Below are positions 1 through 49,464 of a stretch of 52,285 nt of DNA, piece after piece. The position numbers were made by a program, and so were the translations under genes. The stretch is taken from NCBI RefSeq assembly GCF_001194135.2, contig NC_068988.1:33256597-33308881 (forward strand). The letters run 5' to 3'. Each line of letters starts with the position of its first letter. Positions within the stretch are counted from its first letter, which is position 1. Under the pieces are notes generated by a model. The model saw only the letters and a list, made by a program, of their open reading frames with translations, searched no databases and was not told where the DNA came from. The stretch is from Octopus bimaculoides. Lineage: Eukaryota.

Positions 1-962
1 AAGAAACAACATATCTATAAAACAAATGAAATCCAAACTAAAACTAGAACACCAACGGACCATGATAAAACGATGGCAAGAAAAGCCCCTACATAGTAAA
101 TACTGGGCTAAACTAAATGCGAAATAAATAGACAGAGAAAAATCCCAGCAATGGCTGGGAAGCTCAGGACTCAAAGCAGAGACTGGAGGATTTTTAATTG
201 CTGCACAAGACCAAAGCCTCCCCACCAGAAATTACCAAAAACACATAATGAAAAGAAATATAACAAGTAACTGTAGAATATGTGGAGATGGACAAGAAAC
301 AATGAATCATTTTATTTCTGGCTGCCCAGTCCTGGCTAAGAAGTAATATATTCACAGATATTAAAAGAGCTGGGACTTATATACACTGGAAGCTATGCCA
401 ACACTATGGAATAACAACAGAAAAAAGATGGTATAAACAGATGCCAGAAAAGGTCACAGAAAACGAGAAAGCAACCATACTCTGGGATATGCCAATACAC
501 ACAGATAGAGAAATTAAGCCAAATAGACCAGATATAGTTGTCAAAGATGATGAAGAAAAAAAATGCTTTCTAATTGATGTATCAATACCTGCAGATGACA
601 ACGTTTCTCTAAAAGAAATGGAAAAACTTTCAAAAAACAACGACCTGGAAATAGAGAAAACTCGAATGGGGAATCTAAAAACAGAAACAATTCCTATCAT
701 AGTAGGAATAATTATTAGGTATAATTAAAAAAATATTCAGACAAATACATAACAAAGACACCAGGACTTACAAATATGTATAACATACAGAAAATTGCAC
801 TACTAGGTACTGCACACATTCTACGCAAAACACTTTCAATACAGTAAACATAAGAGCACCACAGCAAACCACAGCACATACCCAAGGCGCACAGAGCTGC
901 GCTCGGTAGTGAAGTGATAGCACGTTATAAAAAGAAAACTACTGAACAATAATAATAATAAT
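1..962 (+). mobile_element. 3' end of a restriction-like-endonuclease (RLE) non-LTR retrotransposon, R4/Dong-like, decayed
   Basis: Frame from nt 2 reads ...GLKAETGGFLIAAQDQSLPTRNY...CRICGDGQETMNHFISGC (C-x2-C-x8-H-x4-C knuckle). After frameshifts it reads ILWDMPIHTDREIKPNRPDIVV...CFLIDVSIP (PD-(D/E)xK RLE) and IQKIALLGTAHILRKTLSIQ* (stop 845-847). A short 3'UTR and (AAT)5 at 948-962 follow. Internal stops and frameshifts present. Confidence 0.9.
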
Positions 963-9355: not shown

Positions 9356-9389
<34 letters not shown>

Positions 9390-10300: not shown

Positions 10301-13122
10301 AGAATCAAGGGAAACTTGTGAAATATTTGGAAAAATGAAAATAAATTCTTCTTTCTGATAAGAAACTAGAATAGAATGTAATATTAATTTTGACAAATAT
10401 TTCTTATGCAATAACTACATTATGTTTCACAGTAACGACCACTAAATTAACGTTATATAATATTTAGGAATGGGTGAAATAGTGCATATAGTAAGTAAAT
10501 TACCGATTGTATGCGAGGTATATAATACGTGGGCGAATTCTGACATTAAACACCTTGATAATTGGATTATGTGCAGAATATGAAAGTTCAAACATTCGCA
10601 AGAAAGCGTATCTGCGAGAGTCCTTAATATCTTAAACCCTTTATATGTAATTTAATTATTACTGTGGCACTCCCTTTGACTCTATGAGAGCTAGTAGAAT
10701 CCAATTAATATTGTAAAGAAGAAATTTTTATTCTTAATACTTGTTTGTAGAAATGCAACTTTATTTCTTGGTGATGAACGTGTAGAAAATTTACAACTGC
10801 CATCTAAATGTTGTCTAAACTATTCATCATAATTATATAAACGAATAACCAAACAGATAGCCAAAAGTTTATAATGTCTACAAATCGTTAGTTGTATAAC
10901 GATAGCTGGTGTACAAATTAACGTTAGAATAGAATGAGTGAAAAATAGATTTGATTGGCATATTTAGGAAACTGATAATTGAATCTTTAAAATAACAATA
11001 ATTAACAGCATAAAAGAATACAATAATTAAAAGCTAATATTATTCGCGTGGATTTGCTCCTAAATACAAAACTGTTTCTTAATTAATATAGGTATGAGAA
11101 AAAATGGCAATATTGATTTTTAACTCTTGATATAGTCATTGATATGTGGTATGTTAATATAGTGTAATATATCCAAATGTAATATATCCAAGATGGTGAA
11201 GAAAGGCGATGGTTTTAAAACGAGAATTAAACTCAGAAAGAATTTTACGTTCTAATTATTTGATAGGACACTATTTTTGATGCCAGCATAATATACTACA
11301 AAATGTATTAAACACTTTATAAGTCAAAACTATGTCCTAAAATACTAGTAGTGCTATCAAATCATTTTTAATTTTAGCTCTATAGATTTTCTATAGGATA
11401 GCTAATGGCTTGAAGGGGCAAGAACGCCTGGAGTATGCACATACACCAATTACTTATATTGCCATCTTCGATCACATTATTTACATAAAACGTATTCTTA
11501 TACGAAACATCGCAATAAATCAGTGGTGGATATAATTTCTATAGAAATTCTGTTGAGATAATCTTAAAAAGTTTATATTCTAAAACTTCCAAGTTTAAAA
11601 GACCTTACACTCTTCAATGATTTGCTTCCCGCCTCGTGCAAGAATATCCCTTCTAATACGATATTGCATTTCTCACTATGTTACACTTATATCACGTAAC
11701 ATTCATACGAAAACAAAATACCCCATGTTGCATAGCTCTGTACCCATTAAAATGAGACTGAGAAAGCATTCTACAGTATAAGAAACTTTTCTTTTTCTTT
11801 CACTTCCAATACAATTCCAAGTTTTAATAATATGAAGAAAACGTCGCAACAAGATTTCCTTGACCATGAGTAAAATTTGTAGAGTGTTCAAGTTCGTTCC
11901 AAAAATAATAGTTTACAAAGATGATCGTGGTGTCCACTGAGGAAAGCAACACTCAGAAGCAGATAGGAGAGCGACGGAATTTGACACCTCTTATTCGGAG
12001 CTGGAGTGTCTGGTGCTACATATAAAGAGTGCTGTAGAAGGTTCAAAGATATGGAACTTACCCGAGGCCAGACCACCGATAGATATACATACTCACGCCA
12101 GCTTAATTTATTTCGTCCTTAGTCGAAAGACACCTATTGTTATGTCCTGTTATTTTTATTGTAGTCGTGTAACATTTTGTCGTTTTTTTCCATCCTTGTT
12201 TTGTAAACATTAGCTGCTTTCTTCCAAGGAATCTANNNNNNNNNNNNNNNNNNNNNNNNNNNNNNNNNNNNNNNNNNNNNNNNNNNNNNNNNNNNNNNNN
12301 NNNNNNNNNNNNNNNNNNNNNNNNNNNNNNNNNNNNNNNNNNNNNNNNNNNNNNNNNNNNNNNNNNNNNNNNNNNNNNNNNNNNNNNNNNNNNNNNNNNN
12401 NNNNNNNNNNNNNNNNNNNNNNNNNNNNNNNNNNNNNNNNNNNNNNNNNNNNNNNNNNNNNNNNNNNNNNNNNNNNNNNNNNNNNNNNNNNNNNNNNNNN
12501 NNNNNNNNNNNNNNNNNNNNNNNNNNNNNNNNNNNNNNNNNNNNNNNNNNNNNNNNNNNNNNNNNNNNNNNNNNNNNNNNNNNNNNNNNNNNNNNNNNNN
12601 NNNNNNNNNNNNNNNNNNNNNNNNNNNNNNNNNNNNNNNNNNNNNNNNNNNNNNNNNNNNNNNNNNNNNNNNNNNNNNNNNNNNNNNNNNNNNNNNNNNN
12701 NNNNNNNNNNNNNNNNNNNNNNNNNNNNNNNNNNNNNNNNNNNNNNNNNNNNNNNNNNNNNNNNNNNNNNNNNNNNNNNNNNNNNNNNNNNNNNNNNNNN
12801 NNNNNNNNNNNNNNNNNNNNNNNNNNNNNNNNNNNNNNNNNNNNNNNNNNNNNNNNNNNNNNNNNNNNNNNNNNNNNNNNNNNNNNNNNNNNNNNNNNNN
12901 NNNNNNNNNNNNNNNNNNNNNNNNNNNNNNNNNNNNNNNNNNNNNNNNNNNNNNNNNNNNNNNNNNNNNNNNNNNNNNNNNNNNNNNNNNNNNNNNNNNN
13001 NNNNNNNNNNNNNNNNNNNNNNNNNNNNNNNNNNNNNNNNNNNNNNNNNNNNNNNNNNNNNNNNNNNNNNNNNNNNNNNNNNNNNNNNNATATATATTTC
13101 CATAGTTTAGAAGTGTGATTAC

Positions 13123-13203
13123 GATGACGGATCGGGACGCCCATCAACCTTCACCACTGACGAGAAGATTCAGCAAGATCGAGACATGGCAATGGTGAAC
13201 CGA
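13123..13203 (+). mobile_element. mariner transposase N-terminal fragment
   Basis: Translates DDGSGRPSTFTTDEKIQQDRDMAMVNR, matching the mariner D..RSGRPST..T.E.I..V..MV..DRR segment. Confidence 0.6.
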
Positions 13204-13977
13204 TTCAGGGTTGCACTGTAAAACCAGAAAGTAAAATGGTGCGATCACGCTCAAGATTCCGTCACATGATCACAATATTACCAACTATAAGTACGCATGC
13301 GCAGAAGACAGTATGACAATAATAAAGGTATGTTACTATGAAACTGCTGAAAATTTTGTATCTATACAAAATGTGTATATATACATATATATATCAACAC
13401 ATGCATAGGCACACAGGTATACATCTACACAACATATACACACACAGACATATACCTACACACACATATACATGCATTTATATATATATATATATATNNN
13501 NNNNNNNNNNNNNNNNNNNNNNNNNNNNNNNNNNNNNNNNNNNNNNNNNNNNNNNNNNNNNNNNNNNNNNNNNNNNNNNNNNNNNNNNNNNNNNNNNNNN
13601 NNNNNNNNNNNNNNNNNNNNNNNNNNNNNNNNNNNNNNNNNNNNNNNNNNNNNNNNNNNNNNNNNNNNNNNNNNNNNNNNNNNNNNNNNNNNNNNNNNNN
13701 NNNNNNNNNNNNNNNNNNNNNNNNNNNNNNNNNNNNNNNNNNNNNNNNNNNNNNNNNNNNNNNNNNNNNNNNNNNNNNNNNNNNNNNNNNNNNNNNNNNN
13801 NNNNNNNNNNNNNNNNNNNNNNNNNNNNNNNNNNNNNNNNNNNNNNNNNNNNNNNNNNNNNNNNNNNNNNNNNNNNNNNNNNNNNNNNNNNNNNNNNNNN
13901 NNNNNNNNNNNNNNNNNNNNNNNNNNNNNNNNNNNNNNNNNNNNNNNNNNNNNNNNNNNNNNNNNNNNNNNNNNNNN

Positions 13978-14218
13978 GACCTAAATTGTTCTCAACATGA
14001 AATATAGCAGCATACCAAAACGTAAGCGGGCAAGACATTTAAAATCAACTGCGGTTACATTACAAATCAGGCTGAAGAGGAATAGACAATCGGTAAGATT
14101 CGTTAAATCCGAAACCGGTCCCTGTTTAAGAATGTGTTTTTCTTTAGGTGATTTTAAATGTCTTGCCCGCTTACGTTTTGGTATGCTGCTATATTTCATG
14201 TTGAGAACAATTTAGGTC
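13978..14218. mobile_element. 241-bp foldback element: perfect 70-bp inverted repeats around a 101-bp spacer
   Basis: 13978-14047 is the exact reverse complement of 14149-14218 (checked base by base). TTAA follows at 14219-14222. The left side abuts an N-gap. Confidence 0.85.
14068..14124 (+). ncRNA. minimal type I hammerhead ribozyme
   Basis: Stem I CAGG(14068-71)/CCTG(14121-24); core CTGAAGA (14072-78); stem II GGA/TCC with internal AATC/GATT hairpin; GAAA (14111-14); palindromic stem III ACCGGT; GUC triplet 14118-14120. Confidence 0.85.
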
Positions 14219-16477
14219 TTAATACACAAAATGTGATCTATTTCTAGCACATTAATTGTCCACGTTAGTGGTCAACGTTATATATAAAAATATATATATA
14301 GACAGATAGAGAGAGAGAGGGAAATACATAAATATAAACGTATGTATATAAAGACAAATATATACACACACATACATATATACATGTGTAAGCATACACA
14401 GATATACATATCGCAGTACACACACACATATACACACATGCCTAAATGTTCTAATATATTTCTATGTTGGTGCAAGTGTATGTATGTATGTTTATATACC
14501 CATACACGTATATAATCTACACGCTTACACACACACAAACTTACACCTGTATACATATACTCACACATATATAAATATACCCCCACGCACATGTATATAC
14601 ATATATATATGTGTGTATCTGTGTTTATACACACACATACACACATCCATGTACACAAATATAAACATGAGAGGATGTGCATCCATTCAAACATATATTC
14701 CTATATAAATTTCTATGCATAGACACATACATACATACCTATATACATGCACACACACAAACATATATATATATATATATATATANNNNNNNNNNNNNNN
14801 NNNNNNNNNNNNNNNNNNNNNNNNNNNNNNNNNNNNNNNNNNNNNNNNNNNNNNNNNNNNNNNNNNNNNNNNNNNNNNNNNNNNNNNNNNNNNNNNNNNN
14901 NNNNNNNNNNNNNNNNNNNNNNNNNNNNNNNNNNNNNNNNNNNNNNNNNNNNNNNNNNNNNNNNNNNNNNNNNNNNNNNNNNNNNNNNNNNNNNNNNNNN
15001 NNNNNNNNNNNNNNNNNNNNNNNNNNNNNNNNNNNNNNNNNNNNNNNNNNNNNNNNNNNNNNNNNNNNNNNNNNNNNNNNNNNNNNNNNNNNNNNNNNNN
15101 NNNNNNNATATATACACTTAAACATACATTCAAATATATGTACATAGACATAGAGAAAGAGATTGACAAAGGGATGAGGAAAAACACCTGCATATAACTT
15201 TTGGGTGCATAAAATAGTGCATAAAAGAGTATATATTCTTATGTAGTTTTCATTATTCAGCCAGTGTTTGGCTGGTGTCTTTCAGTGGATTGTCGGTATG
15301 GTAGTTCCAGTCCTTTTTGTCTTATTTTTTCTTCTTGTAAGATATTCATCCTCTATCCTGTGAATATACTACTAGCTAAAATATATGCAACGCAAATTTT
15401 CTTTTCAAGTAAAACTGATGTCAAAAAGCATTTAAATCAGTTTTGTTTGCAGATCAAATTCTAAAGAGATTATTTTGTCTTGTTCAATCCAGATAATGAA
15501 GACCTAACGAAAAATAATATCGTTGACTGCATTCCTACTGATTGCTCAAACACAACAGTTCAACATAACGAATTAGCCAAATTTAAATCTTACAGCTGTT
15601 ATAAACTACAATTTTGATTTACGTAATAATAGTAATAAGAATGATATAAAGCAGTTTCGATTGTACGATAAGCACTACTTATCATTTATTTGATTGTTCT
15701 ATACACTATGAACGTTTTGAAATGGTGATTTTATCTGCATTTAGCGAGACAAGTATAATGGAATTACTAACGCGGACGAATTTATGTGATTTCGCTCTCG
15801 TCAAAAAGCTACTATTTCGATATATCTTCTTGCTGTCTTGAAGAAAATTATGTCGCCTTGTTCTTAATAACAATTCAGTCGCATACGTGTAAAAATAATA
15901 TATATGTAAACTGAGCTGCAATGTCTAGAAGTTTGATAAAAACAATCGTTTTTGTGAATTGTGATGTATGTATCATCATTGATCTCTCTCAAATTTACAA
16001 TTAACTCCAATATATATTTAGCATTATCTAAAATGGACATTTTGCTGCAGATCAGTGAATTTGACATTGCAAATCTAAACTTGCTGTTTAAGTCGTTCCG
16101 TATACATTATGCTGAAAACGCAGTTTAGAATTTCAATAAAGTTACTTAGATTTATATCCCGTCTTTCAAAGTAACAAAAGTACTATAAATATGTGCAAAT
16201 ATGAGAGAACTAAATGTTTCAAGTTCATTTTCTTTGGTGCGATTTTACAATTCTGCTTTGTTATATTTTATTTCAAGTTATATATATATATAACTTGAAA
16301 TAAAATATAACAAAGCAGAATTGTATATATNNNNNNNNNNNNNNNNNNNNNNNNNNNNNNNNNNNNNNNNNNNNNNNNNNNNNNNNNNNNNNNNNNNNNN
16401 NNNNNNNNNNNNNNNNNNNNNNNNNNNNNNNNNNNNNNNNNNNNNNNNNNNNNNNNNNNNNNNNNNNNNNNNNNNNN

Positions 16478-16542
<65 letters not shown>

Positions 16543-22307: not shown

Positions 22308-22340
<33 letters not shown>

Positions 22341-28964: not shown

Positions 28965-31495
28965 ATATGTTACATTATTGGTCACACAGAAGGGACAAAA
29001 TACAAAGTAGAGCATTTCTTTTTGGGAAGAAGAGAGAAAAAAGTGGATCAAATTTCGATCAAAAAGGATCGTTGAAAAAAAAAGCCGATCAGTAGGGATC
29101 GTGTATCACAGAAATGTCAATGTCAAAAGGGAGAACAGATTAGGTTTATCCGTGGAAAGAAAGCTTAGGGAAACGACCACGGTAACCTTAGGCAATTATG
29201 TCATGCGAAAAATACATTACAGTAAGTGACTCACTTTTTCTTTTCTTTTTTTTCTTCATAGTACTATGCTCAAGTTAGTTCCGTCATTCACACGTGCCAT
29301 CCTTGCTACATTCACCCATCTTTTTTTGAAACATTCACTAAACAAAACTTCCTTCTCCACTCTCACCTTCCTCCTCAAGTGATACTTGAAGAAGTTGATG
29401 AGAGAGGAAAGTGTTTGTCTCTAGACCTTTCAGACGTGTCCACCATACACATTCTTTCGCCATAGCCACTTCTAGCTTCTTAACTAGGTCACGGTCCACT
29501 GTGAAGATGGTTGAAGATGGTTGAAGATGGTTCCCGTCAAAGCCCGATTTACTAGCGTGCTAATCCGGTCTCTGAAAACCTGTCTCGACGGGAAAGATGC
29601 GTTTAGTTTCCAGTAACCAGAATCCTGCCTATGTGTCTTATCTCAGTCTAGCGTACACGCCACAAGTTTGTGATCCGTGTAGCTGACGATGTGGAATTGT
29701 GTACACCCTACACTATCTCTATCTACAGTCCTACAAAGGATTCTCTCTAGATATGATCTCGATGACCCGATGAGGTTACTCCATGTCCACGTTGATGCAT
29801 TCGGGTGGTCGAGACGGTACCTGTCAGGCAGTTGAAAGCATTTGAGGAAGGCTCTGATGCATTTGCATCCTCGTCTATTCCTATCTCTACCCACGTAGTC
29901 GAGATGCGTGTCCAAGGTATCATTCCTATACCCCACTAAAAAGTATAGGACGTTCCTAGGAATACTTCTAGACGTCGAAAGAAATCCAGCCGACCAGTTA
30001 AAGGCGGTGTGTAGATTGATACGAGTCGAAAAGCGTACCCATCGCTGCCATCGACATCTAGGAGAAGCAGTCTACCCTCCGGATCTACGAATATTGTCTT
30101 TACTTCGAGATTCAGACTCTCTCGAAAGAGTACCGCCGTGCCACTACCACCCGTTCTCGGCAGACAGGTAGAAAAATAAATGTTAAACTTTCCGCCAAAC
30201 ATGGACTTTAGAGCCCGTGGATTATGGAGTCTGGTCTCACATATGGCTTTGATTTCTAATTCATGTGACTTTATGTCGTTTAAGAGGAACCCTTGTTTCC
30301 AAGGGGACCCCAAGTTTGGCGCATTCACACAGCCAATCCTGATCATAATCCTAATGATTTGTATGTGTATAAACACTAATGATAGGAATAGAGCGTCACC
30401 AACCGTCGGAAATATTTTGTGTTTCCTCCTTCGGTATTTCCTCGAGGAGATCACTATAAAGGTTTTTGGAAGAGTACTTCTGGAATCTTCCAACCGCATC
30501 GGGGTAAATAGATTTTAATGTGTGGTGCAGGGTTGGCGTGATGCGCAATACTTTGATACGTTCTGGTGGTGTTGTGTGTGGGTGGTTGCTTGTTTTTATG
30601 TCTTGGTATGTCAGGTTAGTTTTGTGTTGATGAAATTCATCGACTCTATATTTTTCGTGTTGATGGCAGCGAGCATTTTGCGTGTGTTTGTTTTTGAAGT
30701 GTTGCTGTCGGTCTTGATATTGTGTGTGCTACTGTTGATGTGCGAAAAGTTTTCGGGAGTTGTATATCTTCCTGCTTTCTTCACTTTTGGATTTGATTTG
30801 ATTCTTTTTTGCTCCTTTTCCTCCTTCCATTTCTGGCTATCTGCCATTCCTCACTGCTTTCGTCTTCCGACGAAATGTCTGAGGAATCGGAAGGCGATAG
30901 GGGCATATTGTAAGCTTCTATGTATGTTTGTGTAATTGGTTGTGTTGGTGTTTTCGTTGATGTTGGTTATTTACTGTTTGTGTGTGGTGTATGTGATGTG
31001 GGGGAAGGAGAATCAGTTTTTGTATTGTCTTTTGGTTTTACTGTTTCTTTAGTTCCTGCTGTTATTGTTGGTGGTGCTTTTACAGGTGCTGTTGTATGTT
31101 CATTTGTTGGTGTTGGTGGGTTTGGTTGGTATGTTTCTTTTGTCATACTCCCTTTGCTTGCATTCTGTGATGATGGTGGGGTGGGTAGTAAGGGTTCTTT
31201 TCTCATTTTCCTTTTTCCTTGTTGTGGTTGTTGTTCTTGTTCTTGCTTTTCTTCTTTCTTTGCAGTTGGGCAATCAGTGTTTAGGTGCTCTTCGCTGCCA
31301 CCCAAGTAACAGCGAAGCCTCCTACCTTCTACGATCACGTATAGGATATGGCCGTCTGGCAGCTCAATTTGGTGCGGGATCTATTGTTTGATCTTGATCT
31401 GTTTGTATCAGCAACTGAATCGTTTTTCCCGACAAATTTTGTTGCTCAAATGCAGCAATCTCTAGGATGTTTATGTTATCCTCCATTTGACTAGC
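28965..31495 (-). mobile_element. Tx1/L1-clade LINE, 5'-truncated and internally deleted (RT absent), flanked by (GATA)n
   Basis: ORF1 C-terminus with degenerate knuckle VEGRRLRCYLGGSEEHLNTDCP (30967-31480). APE domain IGCVNA..ICETRL..GRLL..LVSIYTP..YLERI..YTDHKLV..GYWKLNAS (29590-30360). ORF2 C-terminus VAMAKECVWWTRLKGLE...RWVNVARM (stop 29256-29258). A 3'UTR follows. Confidence 0.9.
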
Positions 31496-32940: not shown

Positions 32941-32985
<45 letters not shown>

Positions 32986-33570: not shown

Positions 33571-33616
<46 letters not shown>

Positions 33617-33989: not shown

Positions 33990-34031
<42 letters not shown>

Positions 34032-37461: not shown

Positions 37462-37580
37462 ATTGTTTGAATCTTCTAAGAGATCATAAGTCAGGGAGAA
37501 GATGCACTCATATAAATGTTTGTAGAGAAGGTGTATTATCCAAGTCTTATAGTATAAGACTATAGTATAAAACCATCACA

Positions 37581-37668
37581 GCTAGTCTTACCAATCGGTT
37601 TCGAGCAAAAAATAAAATTGAGTGTTTGGCAACAAAACAATTATATAAATACGCTCATCAGAGGTAGC
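37581..37668 (-). ncRNA. type I hammerhead ribozyme motif in the PLE pseudo-LTR
   Basis: Minus strand: GCTACCT-CTGATGA-G(52-nt stem/loop II)C-GAAA-CCGATTGGT-A-AGACTAGC. Core intact, stem III ACC/GGT, GUA triplet, imperfect stem I. Confidence 0.65.
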
Positions 37669-38032
37669 CGACATAGAAGGGAATATGGTGATTGCTCTCC
37701 ACATTCCGGAGGTGGATTAACACGACCAGTCGGCGTCTGCTGTAAAAAAACGTGGTGTAAGGAAAAAAGGACTAGAGGATTTGCTCAGAGTTATGTCCCT
37801 TGGCCAGGTATGTTATGGAGCCAGCAAAAGTCATCATTGAAGTTGGTATAATCTCTATTAGCAATGTGGTCACATTGCGGGGATGGGGTGTGTGGTGTAT
37901 GTAGCAGTGTTATATGTATATATTTTCTGAGTTTATATATATATATAATTCAATCACTACTACCATCTGCAACAGGTCACTTTCAGGGCACTTGACCATT
38001 TAACATCCTACTACTATCATGGCACTCCCGCA

Positions 38033-38148: not shown

Positions 38149-39926
38149 CGTATCAAAAAATGGCAACGACCTCCAGCCCACAAGAGTAAACAAGAGAGAC
38201 AGAGACAAGCAGAAACAAGGAAAATCCTTTTGTATGCGAATACTATGCAAATATTCTTTTAAAAATCTTTTCTTTTAACTTTTCCAAAATTTAATTGTTT
38301 TCCATACTTACAATCTCAATGACTTAAACCGGTACTGATATATATTTTATAAAATTATTTTTGCATTTTCTGCATTGACTTTTTTTCCAGGATGTAGCAA
38401 TATCTAACGCTGTGTTCGTTACTTTGTTTTCTTTCTGTAAAGGATAACGTTGTGGGTTTGTTATATTAGCGTGCAGTGTATGATGTATAATGTATAATGT
38501 GCGTATGGGGTTGTTTATATTTGGGGGTGTAATTTGCTTCAGAAGCTATGTGCTGATTTTATATGGGTGCATTGGTGGGGTGTGTGTTATGGTCAAAGCC
38601 TTGATGTCATGTCCAAAAGCATTTGTGGAAGGTCGTTTGCGAACGGTTTTGGCAGGGTACCGTGGTGAGAGTCATGGTGAGTCACGTAGGTCTGACAGAA
38701 TGAAATTTATGTTACGTGGACAAGGATTAAACACCGCACTCCTGCTACTGAGGTAAATATCCGGGCCTTGAATGCCTTTTAAAATCGCCCTCTTCTCAGC
38801 TAGGCATAATCTGCGTTCCCTGCTACTATTTAAGTACGGCTTGTATCTTTCAATGATCTTCCACTTTATGGTGTACCCCGTGTGCTAGGGTAGGGTTGTG
38901 GCGTTACGTCTCTTTGGGATGTTGAATGGTTATTAAAGCGGGTTCTGAAGGGGCCTTTCGTTGACCCTACATATTTCCGCACAATCGGTTGTCCGTTGAG
39001 TCATGTTGCTGTTTCCTCTGTCTCGTAAACAACTGTTTCCATATTGTATTGTCCGTTAAGGGGACAAGCTGTGTTACCCCCTACATTTGCATCCTGCTTC
39101 AGTCTATCGTACCTACACGACCCACCATCATTGCAACCATGATTTGCCTACCTCGACTTTTCGCAAACGACTTTCCACCAATGCCCTTGGACATGACATA
39201 AACGATATATGCATATAACGCCCAGAATAATTTATACATATACCACTGCTACATATACCACACACCCCATTCTCGCAGAGTAACTACATTGCTGATACTC
39301 CAATGATGATTTTGCCGGCTCCACAATATACCTAACTAATGGACATAACTCCGAGAAAATCCCCTGATCCTTTTTTTATTCCACCACTTTTTACAGCAGA
39401 TGCCGACCGGTTGTGTTAATCCACCTCCGTAATGTAGAGAGTAATCGCCATATTCTCTTCCAAGTCGACTATCTCTCATGAGCGTATTTATATAATTGTT
39501 TTGTTGCCTAACATTCAATTTTATTTTTATTTTTTGTGTGACACCGATTGTTACAACAAGCTGTCATGTATACTTAATACTATAAAACACGGATAATATA
39601 TATAGAGAGAGAGATACATTAACAGATATATTAAACATTTTCAGAAAAAAGTGACTAGGAAACTATCGTATGTACTCAAGGTCAGTTCACATGGTTTTAT
39701 CATTTCGGCAGAGATAAATATTTATCAGACTGGTGGGCAAGACGTTTTGAGCTATTAACAATATTTGCTTTCTGAAATAAAATCATGTCTGGGATAAAAT
39801 GAAACCAATATCGTCCAAAACCAAATAAAGGAGATATTTTCAGTATTAGTACGTGACTGCCATAACAGAGAAATATATAGTAAACATACATAGACACACA
39901 TATGTATACACATTAATGTATATATA

Positions 39927-41260
39927 CACCCAGAATTACGCTAACAGCTTTGAAGTGAAATTTAGGTTTTCTCAGTTTCGTTGAACCGATTTCGATAAAA
40001 CTTCTCCCAGCTGGTTGGCACACTGCGGCAATACCATTGTTACGTTTTCATTTATTGATATAATGAATTATTTAGCCACATGAGCGCCAAGGCAAAAACG
40101 ACCCGATCGTGGAACGTCCAAAACTGTGACAGCTTGAGATTTAAGGAATATTGACTGCACGTTACCTGGGAAACCTGAACAAACAAGTAAACCATTTTCA
40201 CCGCCTTTGGACTGCCGCATGTACCGAAAACCATGAGAAATCACATCGTCGGGAGCATTGCTTCCGTGCGAGAACTACTGAAACTGCCTCCTCACAGGAG
40301 TTTGAACTTTCAATGGGCCCAAAATCACATGACGTTAAACATGAGTTGTGCTCTGTTCACTGACGAAACCAAAGTCAATTTTGACGTACCTGATAGTTGG
40401 GCAAATTACTGAGTCTTGGAGATGAGAGTTACCAACATTTACAACGACAACAACAGGGTAGAGCAGTCATGTTGTGGGCTAGTATCATTGGGGACAGACT
40501 TGTTGCCCCAGTTAGGGCGCCTAAAGTGATTAAAGTGACCGCAGCCGCCTTCTGCAATCTCCTGAAGAGGGTCTTGGATTCGTGGCTAGATGACATACTG
40601 TTGTCACTTGTAAGTAATCTCGTATTCATATATGACAACGCTGCCTCCCATTGTGCTAGGACCAACCATTCCTAGGTTCTTACGGCATACAAGTTGAAAG
40701 GTTGACGGAGTGGCCACTAGCATCTTCGGTTCTCAACCCTATGGAAAATTTGATCCATTACTAAACAAGATGATAATGCCGATGGACCCGATTGACATCG
40801 AAAGATATCTAATGGGCGACCATCTAAGTTGCAGCAGAGGCAGTCCGTCCTGCAGCTATTAAGACAATGAAAGATTCCCTGACTAATAAAGCGTTTGAAG
40901 TTATCCATCGAAATGACGCTCACATGGCTAAATAATTCATTATGTCAATAAATGTTAAAATATTGTCATGGTTTTCAGTTAAACATATACTCAATGTATG
41001 CTTAATATCTATCATTACCCTTCAGTTTCTGAAGAAAATGTCTAGAAGTGCTATCTTCATTCAAAAACTATTAGCGTGGTTCACCCCAAACCTGAAGAAT
41101 TTGGAATAAAAAAGAAAGGACGCTACACAGAATAATAAAAACATAACAATGGTGTTGCCATTGTGTGCAGACCAACTGAGAAAAGTTTTATCAAAATCGA
41201 TTCTGAGAAAACCGAGAAATCCTAAATTACACTCCTAAGCTATTAGCATGCCTCTGGGTG
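39927..41260 (+). mobile_element. Tc1-family transposon (TRT/DD37E-like motifs), near full length, decayed
   Basis: TA-flanked. ~130-bp imperfect TIRs begin CACCCAGA and end TCTGGGTG. Transposase motifs: ALFTDETKVNFDVPDSWA, RQQQGRAVMLWASIIGDRLV, FIYDNAASH, WPLASSVLNPMEN. Confidence 0.9.
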
Positions 41261-45897: not shown

Positions 45898-46006
45898 CTA
45901 AATTATTTACGAAAGTCTATCTTTTCATCTACGAATCGTTGAAATGAAACGAATATATTCTGACGATTCGTAAAATGGTACGTTAGATCATTCGTAAATA
46001 ATTTAG
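45898..46006. repeat. small nested palindrome (MITE-like)
   Basis: 16-bp perfect IR CTAAATTATTTACGAA/TTCGTAAATAATTTAG, with an inner 10-bp IR TACGAATCGT/ACGATTCGTA. Confidence 0.6.
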
Positions 46007-47203: not shown

Positions 47204-47234
<31 letters not shown>

Positions 47235-47606: not shown

Positions 47607-47704
<98 letters not shown>

Positions 47705-48457: not shown

Positions 48458-49464
48458 ATGGAGAAAACTGAGTATCGTGTTGTCATAAATTACCTTCATT
48501 TGAAAGGCATGACTCCATCTGAAATGCATGAAGATATGATGAGAACCTTAACAGAAAATGTTCCTTCATATGCAACGGTCAACCAAACACTGGGTAAATG
48601 AATCCCAGTGTGGCAGGGAGAGTGTGGAGACTCCAACTGCAACCACCCAGGACAATATTGACCTTGCTCTAGGTATGATAATGCAAGATCGTCGAACATC
48701 ATGTCATGAGCTAGCCGAGAGACTGGGCCTCTCAACTAACTTTGTGACAAAAGAACTTGGGTTCTAAGAGGTGAGTCCCTCACCTTTTGATTCCTGAGCA
48801 GAAACGCACCAGGTGAACTTTGTCTACGAGAAATTTGGAACTGTTTGAAGCCGGCGAACAGAATTTTCTTGCTCGTTTCATTACTATGGACGAAAATTGG
48901 ATTCATCACCAGCCTGAAACAAAAGAAAAATGAAGGCAGTGGAAGCACACAAACTTCTGCTACCCCAAAGAAGGCCAGGATCATTCCTTCAACTGGCAAG
49001 GGCATGGTGTCAGTTTTTTGGGATTTCAAGGTGTCTTGCTGATCGATTACTTTGAAAAGGGTCGGACCATGACAGGACTGTATTATTCTCAGCTACTGAA
49101 ACGCCTCCGAGAATCAATCAAAGAAAAGAAGCCGGTAATGCATACCAGAGGGGTCCTTTTTCATCACTACAATGCTCCAACCCACACCCCAGTGGTTGCT
49201 ATGGCAACAATACGTGATGGTGGACACGAAGTAGTTCCCTATCCACCTTATTCGCCAGACTAAGCCCCCTCTGACTTTCATCTATTCCCAAAAATGAAAA
49301 CAGCACTGGCTGGTCACCATTTCGCCATTGACAATGACGTCATAGACGCTGTAGGAAATTCCTTGGAGTCTCAAACAAAAGATTTCATTTACGGCGGGAT
49401 AATGGCGCTTCAGCACCGCTGGAGAAAATGTTCAGCCATCGAGGGGGACTATGTTGAAAAATAA
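48458..49464 (+). pseudogene. mariner (DD34D) transposase pseudogene; element right TIR ends ~49526
   Basis: MEKTEYRVVINYLHLKGMTPSEMHEDM..., FITMDENWIH, HHYNAPTH (second D mutated to Y), YSPD*APSDFHLF with 34 residues between catalytic positions, and EGDYVEK* end. Frameshifts and stops present. Confidence 0.92.

Follow-up and report, generated by a model that had tools for sequence, protein, structure and literature searches.

A hammerhead ribozyme motif in the spacer of a long perfect hairpin and its possible origin from a PLE- or retrozyme-type insertion

A complete type I hammerhead ribozyme motif (14068-14124, plus strand) lies in the spacer of a long hairpin, which in turn forms part of a 300-nt island of unique sequence (13978-14278) embedded in an extended, degenerate microsatellite of the TA/CA type (from about 13370 to about 15150). 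All coordinates refer to the window, i.e. the whole stretch of DNA analysed here (52,285 nt). The island may well be a relic, short and non-autonomous, that a hammerhead-bearing retroelement of the Penelope-like element (PLE) / non-LTR retrozyme lineage left on insertion into the microsatellite, a reading to which about an even chance of being correct is assigned. If it holds, the locus would join the solitary hammerheads which PLEs and retrozymes have scattered by the thousands in invertebrate and lower-vertebrate genomes, which is helpful for repeat annotation and unsurprising in itself. Its value would be modest and would consist in exemplifying how head-to-head insertions of the PLE type give rise to long hairpins with perfect pairing and interrupt assemblies made from short reads.

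The hairpin comprises a left arm (13978-14050), a non-palindromic spacer of 95 nt that holds the hammerhead motif (14051-14145, plus strand) and a right arm (14146-14218), which is an inverted-repeat match to the left one. Both arms are identical at 72 of 73 positions, the outer 70 bp being perfect (13978-14047 on the left side) and a mismatch occurring at 14048. The resulting 241-nt foldback has a predicted folding energy of -140 kcal/mol (z = -21) and constitutes the strongest hairpin of the window (48 kb of sequence). The possibility that the spacer belongs to a degenerate palindrome of greater length was rejected, as the global alignment of the element with its own reverse complement fails between the arms. 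Immediately to the left lies a scaffold gap of 480 N (13498-13977), and the first base of the left arm is the first base past this gap. Hence, the outer limit of the repeat is hidden, along with the upstream sequence and a target-site duplication, if there is one. On the right side, the unique flank of the island (14219-14278, plus strand) stops at the TA-rich microsatellite; if the repeat extends into the gap, it would mirror this flank there. The microsatellite itself is a degenerate TA/CA repeat on both sides: its left portion (13370-13497) ends in (TA)n at the left of the gap, while the portion to the right of the island (14279-14785) runs up to the following gap, before which it terminates in (TA)n. 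An interpretation of the arms as mariner-type terminal repeats is not supported, given the outer end concealed by the gap and a TTAGGT-like string in an unfitting orientation.

The motif is of the GAAACCGGUC type and was detected by both a descriptor scan and a covariance model. Its conserved core is complete, encompassing C3, U4, G5, A6, N7, G8 and A9 (the CUGAAGA box at 14072-14078), G12, A13 and A14 (within the GAAA box at 14111-14114), the pair A15.1-U16.1 and H17 (U at 14119, C at 14120), and all three helices around this core are present, though minimal in length. Helix I is formed by CAGG (14068-14071) and CCTG (14121-14124), giving 4 bp that are followed by a U-U mismatch and two further pairs. 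Helix II (14079-14110) is closed by the pair G10.1-C11.1 and consists of GGA (14079-14081) and TCC (14108-14110) with an insert of 26 nt between them; hence its contiguous pairs number three, while beyond a 3x3 internal loop a distal hairpin of GAC/GUU plus AAUC/GAUU contributes 7 bp with a bulge. Positions 9 and 10.1 are not separated by an unpaired base, and a scan tolerating such a bulge aligns the motif in the bulge-free form only. Helix III is made up of the palindrome ACCGGU (14114-14119), which is its own reverse complement. In the monomer, it yields a single A-U pair capped by a CCGG tetraloop, whereas two molecules would pair over 6 bp. Cleavage is predicted 3' of C17 (14120) at a GUC site. 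The preliminary description of this DNA had listed the complete core, stems I and II, the GUC triplet and the palindromic ACCGGU at the same positions, and a renewed reading of the sequence came out identical. Its further statements, that the ribozyme sits in the loop of a perfect 70-bp hairpin and is centred in the foldback, also hold in the sequence as given, with the motif midpoint at 14096 and the foldback centre at 14098.

The architecture of helix III bears directly on the predicted activity. Co-folding of two 57-nt copies with RNAcofold yields a classic double hammerhead (-25.9 vs 2 x -11.6 kcal/mol), in which an intermolecular ACCGGU/ACCGGU helix III of 6 bp is formed and the strands of helix I are swapped. 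This prediction, as well as the literature, agrees with the earlier proposal that the ribozyme would act as a dimer through its palindrome. In the isolated spacer, the hammerhead-competent fold is 2.6 kcal/mol less stable than the minimum, and its helices have probabilities of 0.54-0.77. A second hammerhead that might serve as dimer partner in cis was not found on either strand anywhere in the window. Since a partner in cis is missing, the motif is most likely inactive at its locus, where the hammerhead is probably inert or would at best cleave rarely in trans. A precedent is the newt/axolotl HHR_Amex1 hammerhead, the retrozyme monomer of which cleaves to about 6% after one hour in a transcription assay, while amphibian hammerheads of this kind are efficiently cleaved as dimers (PMC7229834). 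As in HHR_Amex1, one A-U pair is combined with a palindromic tetraloop (ACAUGU there, ACCGGU here), the cleavage site is GUC and the strand reads GAAAC-CG-GUC in place of GAAAC-AU-GUC (PMC7229834); poor activity of the monomer and cleavage as a dimer would be expected for the candidate by analogy. On the contrary, hammerheads of the HHR_Amex1 type have 6 bp in helix I and 4 bp in helix II, the loop of the latter being short, show conserved contacts between loops, and reside in tandem repeats of 330-350 bp that are expressed as circular RNAs (PMC7229834), whereas the candidate is devoid of a tandem repeat, carries the 26-nt insert in helix II and interrupts helix I by the U-U mismatch after 4 bp.

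The arrangement of the locus corresponds in several respects to what is known of PLE insertions. These are highly 5'-truncated and frequently accompanied by an adjacent, inverted and likewise 5'-truncated copy, so that inverted repeats are formed; moreover, they exhibit a strong bias towards microsatellites and are troublesome for short-read assemblies (PMC8557442). The locus shares with them an inverted repeat around a unique segment, a presumably heavy truncation, a TA-type microsatellite as the putative site of insertion and breakage of the assembly, and differs in that the unit is non-coding and measures at most about 0.8 kb, its arm corresponding only presumably to a PLE terminus. The presence of the motif in the spacer of the strongest hairpin, which is unlikely by chance, is expected from the architecture of PLE insertions. 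The alternative that had been offered in the preliminary description, namely an inverted junction of PLE pseudo-LTRs, fits both the evidence and the inverted truncated copies reported for these elements (PMC8557442).

According to the proposed scenario, a single insertion event would have produced a head-to-head pair of copies, both 5'-truncated. The longer member of the pair, on the plus strand and extending from about 14051 rightwards, would have retained the hammerhead, while the shorter left copy would be inverted and truncated downstream of the ribozyme, with its inner 73 nt being visible before the gap. Two copies truncated in this manner would give rise to identical arms and to a unique spacer containing the hammerhead, and the hairpin with a ribozyme in its loop would be a by-product of the insertion as opposed to a functional design. 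The 73-nt length of the left arm may simply reflect the reach of short reads anchored in the unique spacer. With its weak helix III, the ribozyme would be nearly inactive as a monomer and would need a second copy to establish the helix of 6 bp. The motif, the repeat, the gap, the microsatellite setting, the predicted dimer and the want of copies in the window are observed, whereas we infer that the island descends from a PLE or retrozyme, that two copies were inserted and that the ribozyme is inactive.

Genomic minimal hammerheads of metazoan PLEs occur in thousands per genome, most of them solitary and some as close pairs on opposite strands (PMC4209133). [quoted passage not shown] On the other hand, it deviates from the PLE hammerheads by lacking the unpaired base that separates positions 9 and 10.1 there, by a helix II of 3 bp plus an interrupted extension in place of six to eight continuous pairs, and by a setting in which neither a pLTR nor an RT-GIY-YIG context is visible (PMC4209133). 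A similar picture emerges for non-LTR retrozymes, which are derived from pLTRs and whose solo monomers are common (bioRxiv 10.64898/2026.07.22.740005) and considered immobile offspring (PMC7229834; bioRxiv 10.64898/2026.07.22.740005): the non-coding unit of a few hundred nucleotides, the single type I hammerhead and the low GC content match these solo monomers (PMC7229834; bioRxiv 10.64898/2026.07.22.740005), while the 150-450 bp head-to-tail tandem copies of retrozymes (PMC7229834) are absent from the locus. Neither in 13978-14785 nor elsewhere in the window was a tandem or direct repeat of the unit found, although the left gap could hide one.

Further searches were directed at relatives and coding partners of the element. 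Within the 52-kb window, no second copy of the arm, the spacer or the motif exists. Scanning a metagenome with the pattern CTGANGAGGA-N(18-34)-TCCGAAACCGGTC returned one match and no relative, as the contig concerned is GC-rich, cannot pair helix I and lacks any Rfam match, so that it was judged a chance hit. Neither the 22-mers of arm and spacer, searched against GTDB genome contigs, nor the hammerhead pattern and the arm, searched against viral contigs, had a match. A Pfam search for PLE reverse transcriptase or GIY-YIG domains on the frames of at least 60 aa in 1-31955 gave no match and was of low sensitivity, since the search on concatenated frames missed a zf-RVT match that the single frame gives. 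Because most genomic copies are solitary (PMC4209133), the missing RT/GIY-YIG is compatible with PLE descent. An exact-protein look-up of two 72-aa frames spanning the element and of a 187-aa endonuclease-like frame elsewhere in the window retrieved no record. An origin from a tRNA or SINE was rejected, tRNA genes being absent from the window. Counting against descent from a PLE or retrozyme are a miss in Rfam, the three contiguous pairs of helix II, the non-significant z-score of the distal hairpin (-1.26), the absent bulge between 9 and 10.1, the lack of an RT or GIY-YIG frame and the lack of a further copy in the window. That PLEs are present in the source genome is an assumption made by analogy to the invertebrate-like relatives of a LINE fragment described below.

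An origin of the hairpin in assembly or gap closing is the first alternative to be weighed. In this case, the left arm would not truly be next to the spacer, or would stem from another copy of the repeat, and the locus would consist of a segment in single copy, be its hammerhead genuine or not. The position of the left arm directly past the 480-N gap and the identity of the arms at 70 of 70 outer positions are in line with such an artefact, as is the scaffold as a whole, which is short-read-like and contains 12 N runs, structures of this kind being noted to upset short-read assemblies (PMC8557442). Moreover, a second perfect foldback on the same scaffold, an 80-nt palindrome at 16246-16325 with unique arms of 33 nt around (TA)7, ends 5 nt before another gap (at 16331) and may be either a real TA-centred cruciform site or a turn-back artefact of the de Bruijn graph. 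Foldbacks at contig ends hence recur in this scaffold, be it that the assembly is interrupted by hairpins and TA repeats or that the assembler makes some of them. However, the turn-back route via (TA)n is inapplicable to the ribozyme foldback, since its unique, non-palindromic spacer of 95 nt offers a de Bruijn path no self-complementary k-mers, and the junction of arm and spacer requires spanning reads. In addition, contigs would be expected to break within or at the edge of an inverted repeat even if it is real, and real hairpins and TA repeats themselves cause gaps. An artefact is therefore regarded as unlikely, while deserving some weight.

With regard to the gaps of this scaffold, which has 34% GC and many microsatellites, (TA)n runs flank most of them, e.g. 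at 9360-9389, 13476-13497, 14764-14785, 16478-16515 and 22308-22330 and, further along, at 32948-32985, 33572-33613, 33991-34022, 47210-47234 and 47607-47656. The gaps thus largely correspond to TA microsatellites that were left unassembled. An exception is the gap whose right edge lies at 13977, since this edge adjoins an arm of an inverted repeat and not a (TA)n run.

A second alternative holds that a hammerhead-like match arose by chance inside an unrelated foldback, such as an element resembling a MITE or an inverted duplication of local origin, and its merit depends on how often comparable motifs are to be expected. Descriptor scans of both strands of the whole window returned 14068-14124 as the sole site, and still did so when the descriptor was relaxed so that 3 bp sufficed for helix I and both a bulge and a U3-A8 variant of the core were allowed. 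In simulated windows, the loose descriptor is matched 0.06 times per window, which amounts to thousands per genome and renders it uninformative at the genome scale. The strict descriptor adds the pair G10.1-C11.1 and a palindromic helix III, features set a priori by the literature, where both are counted as evidence against randomness (PMC4209133). It was matched twice in 1e9 random bases, in both instances with 4-nt palindromes, which corresponds to some 2e-4 expected matches per window and about 4 per Gb. This rate argues against chance for a single window, yet still leaves up to a few sites per Gb, and many windows may have been screened. Besides, the spacer makes up 0.2% of the sequence, and a random motif would fall within these 95 nt with a probability of about 0.2%.

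Searches with covariance models yielded a divided result. No hammerhead or other ribozyme family of Rfam matched, neither in the whole window at the gathering score nor in segments of 283 nt and 73 nt at E<=10, all matches being noise. In contrast, a model derived from four metazoan retrozyme hammerheads with experimentally demonstrated cleavage (one each from a coral and a mussel, two from axolotl; supplement of PMC7229834), run with filters off on both strands of the 52 kb, placed the candidate first in the window with 15.5 bits (E about 0.03), its alignment containing a 28-nt insertion in helix II. The match is suggestive of a hammerhead, yet far from genome-wide significance, as this E value, scaled up, corresponds to hundreds of equal matches per Gb. 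The runner-up of this search was 13151-13198 (plus strand, 11.5 bits, E = 0.47, CACUGACGA), which was judged a chance match, since it has a 6-bp helix I but is devoid of helix II, GAAA and helix III.

Several observations speak for chance: helices I and II are minimal with 4 and 3 bp, the Rfam models detect no hammerhead, the score of the retrozyme model is just 15.5 bits and family evidence is wanting, and the window contains other small foldbacks (e.g. 45898-46006). Nor does fold stability exceed that of shuffled sequences for the spacer (z = +0.14), the 57-nt motif (-0.66), the helix II arm (-1.26) or an extended form of 81 nt (-1.58). They are opposed by the low expectation for the strict descriptor, the improbable placement in the spacer, the palindromic helix III together with G10.1-C11.1, and the first rank obtained with a model of validated ribozymes. 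Hence, a fortuitous motif is considered improbable.

The headline of the preliminary description, an undescribed hairpin- or rod-like ribozyme retroelement, is supported neither by copies nor by structure statistics nor by a mechanism of release. It would imply that small retroelements of foldback type, or loci of hairpin RNA, make up a distinct new family whose long and perfectly paired transcript is processed by a hammerhead that lies in the terminal loop and depends on dimerisation. The near-central position of the motif would suit such a design, and so would a rod that sequesters the core while the hammerhead-competent fold of the full foldback lies 3.3 kcal/mol above the minimum (helix probabilities 0.26-0.38), a relation recalling the switches of viroid-like RNAs; however, the element is a single locus without copies in the window and with its outer end hidden by the gap, self-pairing of the spacer is no better than that of shuffles, the minimum-energy fold pairs the catalytic core away (14072-14084 with 14135-14147, AUCGGU with ACCGGU), a perfect duplex of 70 bp is atypical of retrozyme or viroid-like rods and such an inverted duplication is not among the described features of retrozymes, neither a tandem arrangement nor a second cleavage site is available to release the unit, and the known pattern of PLE insertions accounts for the geometry more simply (PMC8557442). 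That the foldback is real and recurs as a family, i.e. as a non-autonomous element with a hairpin transcript and a hammerhead switching between the core-sequestering rod and the active fold, is thus very improbable. Were it true, ribozyme processing would be tied to hairpin or small-RNA biogenesis, or a new PLE-dependent mode of mobilisation would be at hand, and only as a recurrent, transcribed family of hairpin-plus-ribozyme layout would the locus matter more than the solitary remnant favoured here.

Apart from the island, the window holds a variety of repeats and transposon remnants. Judged from its sequence, it looks like part of an animal genome of the invertebrate kind, as it contains the 3' end of a LINE with relatives in invertebrates, a mariner fragment and an endonuclease-like frame. 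The LINE reading frame (128-725, plus strand) represents the 3' end with its conserved C-terminal region; a zf-RVT domain at 128-343 scores just under the Pfam cut-off (E = 1.7e-5), and homologues of this frame occur in Holothuria (sea cucumber), Exaiptasia (anemone) and Penaeus (shrimp) with 50-62% identity as well as in ENA contigs with 75-83% identity. Two consecutive frames at 29646-30514 (minus strand) resemble the apurinic-type endonuclease domain of LINEs and include the 187-aa frame mentioned above (29936-30499). They have no Pfam match themselves, and the only database relative of the 187-aa frame is the ENA protein P0001 (52% identity), which carries PF03372 (Exo_endo_phos).

Inverted repeats other than the ribozyme foldback are present as well. 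The imperfect 109-nt foldback at 45898-46006 is self-complementary at 72%, bears perfect termini of 16 nt (CTAAATTATTTACGAA / TTCGTAAATAATTTAG) and appears MITE-like, with no obvious target-site duplication. An inverted repeat of 41 nt (90%; 40049-40089 / 40914-40954) brackets about 900 bp comprising a Tc1/mariner-like transposase fragment, the reading frame of which (40397-40672) yielded no significant Pfam match. A more extended pair (37534-37946 / 39205-39598) is 78% identical over 421 nt with its members about 1.2 kb apart, and a second, weaker pair is located at 38601-38704 / 39098-39202.

To the left of the microsatellite and the gap, a GC-richer unique stretch (13096-13215, plus strand) translates to DDGSGRPSTFTTDEKIQQDRDMAMVNRFRVAL. 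This 32-aa piece had no match in Pfam and resembles the N-terminal helix-turn-helix region of mariner transposases. A further fragment of a mariner-type transposase extends over two frames at 48934-49461 (plus strand), with a match to Transposase_1 at 48934-49260 (E = 2.3e-8).
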